Of a DNA stretch of 64,000 nucleotides, positions 53,945 to 54,151 are shown piece by piece; the first letter of the stretch is position 1, and every line of letters starts with the position of its first letter. Made by a program: the position numbers and the translations under genes. The notes beneath the pieces were generated by a model. The model made no database searches and was not told the origin of the DNA. It saw only the letters and a list, made by a program, of their open reading frames with translations. Source of the stretch: Podarcis filfolensis (lineage: Eukaryota); the NCBI GenBank assembly GCA_964270895.1, contig OZ185435.1; one strand, written 5' to 3'.

Positions 53945-54151
53945 CTGGAGCCGGGGAGTTGCGTGCCCAACCCGGACCCCGCGTCGCCGAAAGGGCTCGG
54001 CTCGGCCGCCTGGTGCCTTCAGCCGGACCCGGGCAGGGGCCAGAGCGCTTGGAGCAAGTGCAGCGCCGGCGCCGGAGGAGCAGGCGGCGGCGGCAGTAGC
54101 GGCGGCAGCGAGTGGTTCCCGGCGCCCCGGCGGAAAGTTTGCGGCGACGCC
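53945..54151 (+). CDS. WT1: Candidate CUG-initiated 69-aa N-terminal extension of WT1
   Basis: In-frame CTG (gggCTGg) 207 nt upstream of the ATG with no stop or ATG between. The peptide [26 protein letters not shown]...WSK resembles the recalled human extension [26 protein letters not shown]...WAK. Translation is inferred. Confidence 0.6.

Follow-up and report, generated by a model that had tools for sequence, protein, structure and literature searches.

The leader of WT1 exon 1 in the lizard Podarcis filfolensis appears to encode the orthologue of the CUG-initiated N-terminal extension known from mammalian WT1, a reading to which we give a probability of roughly 70% and which rests on comparison of sequences: an open frame, CUG codons that are invariant together with their contexts, indels that preserve the frame, purifying selection specific to that frame and homology to the mammalian sequence. 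Upstream of the ATG, the leader behaves as protein-coding sequence in squamates and birds. What would be new here is an orthologue of a known mammalian feature in clades said to lack it, and we found no report of a sauropsid (bird or reptile) WT1 extension in the literature searched.

The open leader of WT1 exon 1

In the window (the whole stretch of 64,000 nucleotides that was analysed; coordinates refer to the + strand unless the minus strand is named), the coding part of WT1 exon 1 occupies 54152–54557; it opens with the canonical ATG and borders the donor GT at 54558, and its protein starts MGSDVRDLN. The preliminary description had pointed to a CTG in strong context 69 codons before this ATG, in a frame free of stops back to a TAA and with no ATG upstream, and the sequence bears out all of these features. 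The codon in question (53945–53947, here CTG2), a possible second start, has G at −3 (53942) and G at +4 (53948); the WT1 frame stays open for 160 codons in the window, back to the TAA at 53669–53671 that is the first in-frame stop 5′ of the ATG and overlaps a donor-like GT-AAGA; and no ATG occurs in any frame anywhere in 53669–54151. The same frame holds another CTG farther 5′ (53900–53902, here CTG1), 84 codons from the ATG and in the context gcgACC-CTG-Gag (A−3/G+4), and this codon is the most likely non-AUG start. Between the two lie the 14 codons of segment U (53903–53944), which display codon-level purifying selection, and the remainder of the extension, segment E (53948–54151), carries the landmarks SC.P, ASPKGL, AWCLQP, W.K, [DE]WF and PRRK.C together with a GGC/GCC-rich stretch at 54062–54109, a Gly/Ala/Ser run whose length varies among species in multiples of 3. 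A T13 run (53786–53798) and a CT/CTGT microsatellite (53828–53864) adjoin the conserved block on its 5′ side, the latter being a CT-rich, unconserved stretch just 5′ of the block; CT-rich repeats are found at the equivalent place in other squamates too, with differing length.

The leader is 73–76% GC, and three of its six frames are open throughout. No in-frame stop is present in 45% of dinucleotide shuffles of 53945–54151 (40–45% overall), and when the 160-codon open stretch is shuffled, an in-frame CTG with R−3/G+4 appears in 28% of cases. Since openness is so common in shuffles, the single-sequence pattern is real yet not beyond chance, and openness alone was dropped as evidence of coding.

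Constraint on codons across squamates and birds

A search at the protein level, queried with the leader and exon 1 together, gave matches that span the whole query, including the extension, in three squamate-like ORFs, about 14 bird ORFs (Hirundo rustica and Pezoporus among them) and several mammalian ones, and the 14 bird and three squamate ORFs, all from public assemblies, read through the leader in frame. The queries of later searches were 53860–54151 or extension-only references. In a profile search over 1.84 billion representatives, the ORFs that contained the extension came exclusively from birds, snakes, eutherians and marsupials, the other matches were low-complexity or repeat proteins, and no Pfam family covers the extension. 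At the DNA level, we compared genomic sequence from Varanus, Crotalus, Phrynocephalus, Lerista, Paroedura, Hirundo, Casuarius, the marsupial Antechinus and Xenopus tropicalis, which with the window species gives six squamates, two birds, one marsupial and one amphibian. No stop interrupts the WT1 frame from CTG1 as far as the ATG in any of the eight sauropsids or in the marsupial, and translation of these leaders gives recognisably one and the same peptide. In the Phrynocephalus forsythii assembly (L003, ∼2927–3367), exon 1 contains a frameshift within a CCG (poly-Pro) run, where tblastn gives two frames. An error in assembling GC-rich sequence is the probable cause, and such sequence in that assembly may hold errors.

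The leaders were aligned as nucleotides, with no regard to frame. The lengths from CTG1 to ATG in the eight sauropsids are 255, 243, 243, 240, 255, 258, 225 and 225 nt, all multiples of 3, as are 16 of the 18 distinct gap blocks, the other two (7 and 8 nt) being a single 15-nt gap split by the aligner. Some of the leader indels are changes in GCC/GGC repeats, and those lying outside the repeats (3, 6, 9 and 15 nt) preserve the frame too. The Gly/Ala/Ser run at 54062–54109 is 12 nt longer in the window species than in Varanus or Lerista, with 36 nt missing in Phrynocephalus and the birds and 30 nt in Paroedura, every one of these differences being in frame. Of the 36 gaps upstream of the leader, just 9 are multiples of 3, and the flanking DNA is unconserved and carries indels that break the frame. 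Among the six squamates, 53% of the gap-free columns are invariant in the leader, compared with 22% in the 150 nt upstream and 13% in intron 1.

Substitutions in the leader follow the WT1 codons, with minimum counts of 45, 33 and 67 at positions 1, 2 and 3, respectively (p=0.002). By the NG86 method with a column bootstrap, ω is 0.33 (95% CI 0.22–0.47) for the WT1 frame, and the two remaining + frames give 1.47 and 1.74. The low value holds for squamates alone and after removal of the Gly/Ala/Ser repeat (0.31), and is unchanged when Phrynocephalus is left out. By segment, NG86 gives 0.17 for U and 0.35 for E, against 0.18 for exon 1 proper, where the local statistics left out the first 13 codons. 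The codon model GY+F3X4 in iqtree2 yields an ω of 0.135 for the WT1 frame and rejects ω=1 (2ΔlnL=134.5, p=4e-31), as it does for squamates alone (p=1.6e-26), and gives 2.4–2.6 for the off-frames; under the same model, ω is 0.06 for U (p=1e-10) and 0.115 for E (p=4e-24). Segment U is the most constrained part of the leader, with 0–1 second-position changes compared with 12 at third positions.

The likely start codon and competing explanations of the conserved leader

Conservation begins abruptly at GGCGA[CT]C-CTG-GA, that is, at CTG1, and just 5′ of it, up to ∼53880, the species differ by indels of 1, 2, 7 and 8 nt. CTG1 is invariant in all nine amniote DNAs (six squamates, two birds and the marsupial), in the context ACC-CUG-G. 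The CTG of Antechinus aligns with it, and so does residue 1 of macaque P0183, whose annotated start, MDFLLL, lies 73 residues before MGSDV; an extension of 73 residues is also what current human RefSeq numbering gives. Given that constraint sets in at CTG1 and that CTG1 aligns with the macaque and marsupial starts, the likely product is an 84-aa extension. On these alignments, CTG1 at 53900 rather than CTG2 at 53945 is the likely start, with CTG2 as a possible secondary start confined to sauropsids.

Among the competing explanations, the one that fares best, though we consider it unlikely, keeps the extension coding but starts it only at CTG2, giving 69 aa, with 53900–53944 retained as, for example, an initiation-context or leader element. 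CTG2 with its G−3/G+4 is invariant in all eight sauropsids, and its 69 codons are close to the 68 of the original mammalian report (Bruening and Pelletier 1996, as cited in PMC4474557 and PMC12045569, where the extension is given as 68 aa). Against this, it is segment U, upstream of CTG2, that is under the strongest constraint (ω 0.06–0.17, p=1e-10); CTG2 sits inside an insertion found only in sauropsids and is without a counterpart in Antechinus; and in mink, whale, sheep and Antechinus the codon aligned with the human −204 CUG encodes Pro or Arg.

A separate observation concerns Mustela lutreola P0104, in which residues 54–60 (..AAIPDFLLPQEP..) place Pro at both the residue aligned with CTG1 and that aligned with the human −204 CUG; if this sequence is correct, neither CUG start is available there.

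For sauropsid WT1 we infer a leader lying within the mRNA, a main start at CUG 53900, a sharing of initiation among start codons and any function that the extension may have; the codon constraint on 53903–53944 lends the first of these indirect support. Scanning ribosomes would meet the in-frame CUG at 53900, in the optimal A−3/G+4 context, and a fraction of them would initiate there to produce WT1 with 84 additional residues; the second in-frame CUG at 53945 (G−3, G+4) may yield a 69-residue version, and the leftover ribosomes would leak through to the AUG at 54152. In sequencing runs of a related species, small runs marked "RNA?" (possibly capture DNA) gave the same word shares as the DNA runs of that species, both for the leader and for the 300 nt upstream, and this measure thus does not tell RNA from DNA.

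It is very improbable, in our estimate, that the leader is non-coding and was kept as a CpG-island promoter or 5′-UTR element, its open frame being a by-product of 75% GC and triplet slippage. Such an account would accommodate the chance openness of 40–45% of shuffles, the three open frames of six and the several indels that, as changes in GCC/GGC repeats, are multiples of 3 by nature, and conserved non-coding blocks do exist farther upstream when birds are compared with mammals. It does not accommodate an ω that is frame-specific (0.13–0.33 versus 1.4–2.6 in the other + frames) and the same once the repeat is removed, a substitution periodicity in which position 3 exceeds 1 and 1 exceeds 2, or non-repeat indels of 3, 6, 9 and 15 nt that keep the frame. 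Conservation also falls sharply at both flanks, and the RNA downstream of either CUG folds no more strongly than shuffled sequence (z-scores of +0.7 to +1.8).

About 150 codons 5′ of the ATG, a second block is seen in bird ORFs P0009, P0013 and P0018 and in the primate-like P0105 (..PLFELCKVE.EQASEVR.. versus ..PLLFELWEAEGSQAAGVR..). The frame between this block and the extension is broken among birds, and the block thus looks like a conserved, non-coding part of the promoter or leader.

Of comparably small probability is a 275-nt leader intron at 53668–53942, which would put CTG2 2 nt past the acceptor and make 53900–53942 a polypyrimidine tract. The sequence offers a good donor at 53668 (GAG|GTAAGA) and a pyrimidine-rich tract ending in CAG at 53940–53942 (...CCCGCAG), and the ab initio Hirundo model P0005 splices onto the equivalent position. 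The acceptor AG, however, is missing in three of the six squamates, namely Lerista (CCG G) and Phrynocephalus and Paroedura (both GCG G), and the supposed 3′ end of the intron evolves as codons (ω 0.06–0.17) and in every species keeps the frame of the ORF that follows; the sequence 5′ of it is unalignable. Were 53668–53942 spliced out, the TGA at 53664–53666 would sit two codons before the CTG at 53945.

Finally, we attach a negligible probability to constraint from an opposite-strand protein, such as the 296-aa minus-strand ORF at 53813–54703 that spans leader and exon 1, and rejected antisense coding on the minus-frame ω values (1.09, 2.52 and 0.57 in the leader) and stops: the 296-aa ORF shares its codon boundaries with + frame 0, and its ω of ∼1.09 marks it as a by-product of GC-richness, whereas the frame with 0.57 shares the wobble positions of the WT1 frame, is interrupted by stops below 54019 and fares worse than that frame.

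Homology, origin and comparison with known non-AUG extensions

A profile of 10 sauropsid extensions aligned by hhalign with one of five mammalian extensions gives a probability of 88.8% (E=2.5e-6) over 49 columns. In BLASTP, the lizard extension matches that of Antechinus with E=2e-5 and the eutherian extensions weakly (E=0.017 for macaque, and 0.23), and the marsupial peptide is intermediate in its motifs (ASPRAL, PWCLQQ, TWSK). AlphaFold2 returns a mean pLDDT of 55 and no secondary structure for the extension, consistent with a disordered region that carries short conserved motifs.

The preliminary description had compared the lizard translation with the human peptide, and the primate-like ORF P0105 and macaque P0183 do carry PAS...L.S...CL and WAK. 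Its third-position differences in shared residues reappear in the marsupial, which has TGT, TCT and CTT for the lizard TGC, TCG and CTC, and the protein-level constraint it suspected is found in a WT1-frame ω of 0.13–0.33, well below 1. Broken frames or a lost CTG in relatives had been named as points against coding; among the six squamates and two birds the frame is intact, all leader indels are multiples of 3, and the CTG at 53945 is retained in all eight sauropsids. Its wider proposal, that the extension may be ancestral to amniotes, is well supported as regards homology to mammals and constraint, but not as regards 53945 as the point where constraint begins, which is 53900 instead.

In the 1.5 kb upstream in Xenopus tropicalis, searched in every frame, the profile of the amniote extension has no match; the leader there has an in-frame stop 15 codons 5′ of the ATG, is 59% GC and contains four ATGs. 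The presence of the extension in squamates, birds, marsupials and eutherians, and not in Xenopus tropicalis, places its origin in or before the amniote ancestor, and on this distribution of sequences we regard such an origin as probable. Given its absence in Xenopus, the extension may have arisen when the amniote WT1 leader became GC-rich and AUG-free. A more specific reading, for which we see the odds as even, is that of an amniote-wide proteoform some 320 million years old, in which ACC-CUG-G (53900) is the ancestral start and the human −204 CUG and CUG 53945 are secondary, lineage-specific starts. If it is true, sauropsids could make three N-terminal forms of WT1, and the depth of purifying selection would imply that the extension matters for fitness in a way that went unseen in laboratory knock-out mice.

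The label "mammal-specific" appears in the title of a mouse knock-out study (Miles et al. 2003, as cited in PMC4474557), and has led to the extension being seen as a late and dispensable addition. That squamates, birds and mammals all show constraint argues for a selected function, although the mouse knock-out is without a visible phenotype. The comparison would relocate the likely ancestral start codon, indicates that sauropsid WT1 annotations at present begin too far downstream, and would set pan-amniote motifs apart from those confined to mammals, among them the AKT site that has been linked to the oncogenic action of mammalian CUG-initiated WT1 (cugWT1). Kidney and gonad development in chick embryos and in reptiles, including species with temperature-dependent sex determination, would become a setting in which to study the isoform.

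Compared with mammalian cugWT1, the sauropsid extension is likewise contiguous and in frame with the same AUG, in the same exon and in a GC-rich, AUG-free leader, and a CUG with A−3/G+4 stands at the aligned position in both. The landmarks are collinear (an L[DE] start, LL, C.P, PAS, L, CL[QP], W.K and an RR-rich end), and the lengths are similar, with 74 residues in birds and 72–73 in mammals. Sauropsids differ in an extra block of ∼10 codons (NLALS...APAGL) that includes the second conserved CUG, and the variable Gly/Ala/Ser run is a squamate addition. The mammalian tail contains an RxRxxS AKT site (RRSRGAS), and S62 of the human extension is phosphorylated by AKT (2025 review, PMC12045569), a trait that bears on function and does not define cugWT1, whereas sauropsids have PRRK[VIA]C[GA], with no Ser/Thr there; lacking this counterpart, the sauropsid extension may differ in function. 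Translation of the extension has been shown experimentally in mammals only, the sauropsid one being known from sequence.

Exon 5 of WT1 (17AA) has also been called mammal-specific, and it and the N-terminal extension are each dispensable in knock-out mice (PMC4474557). The status of exon 5 is unquestioned here; it is the N-terminal extension alone that turns out to be common to sauropsids. Surveys of conserved non-AUG extensions (Ivanov et al. 2011, PMC3105428; Fedorova et al. 2022, PMC9789052) have centred on human, mouse or other mammals, and Ivanov et al. 2011 and the main text of PMC9789052 include WT1 among the known cases and leave the depth of its conservation unstated. The evidence in those surveys is of the same kind as that presented here, namely a near-cognate codon that is conserved and in good context, with Ka/Ks <1 5′ of the annotated AUG, and in them, as proposed here for sauropsid WT1, leaky scanning gives rise to several proteoforms with a common C-terminus.
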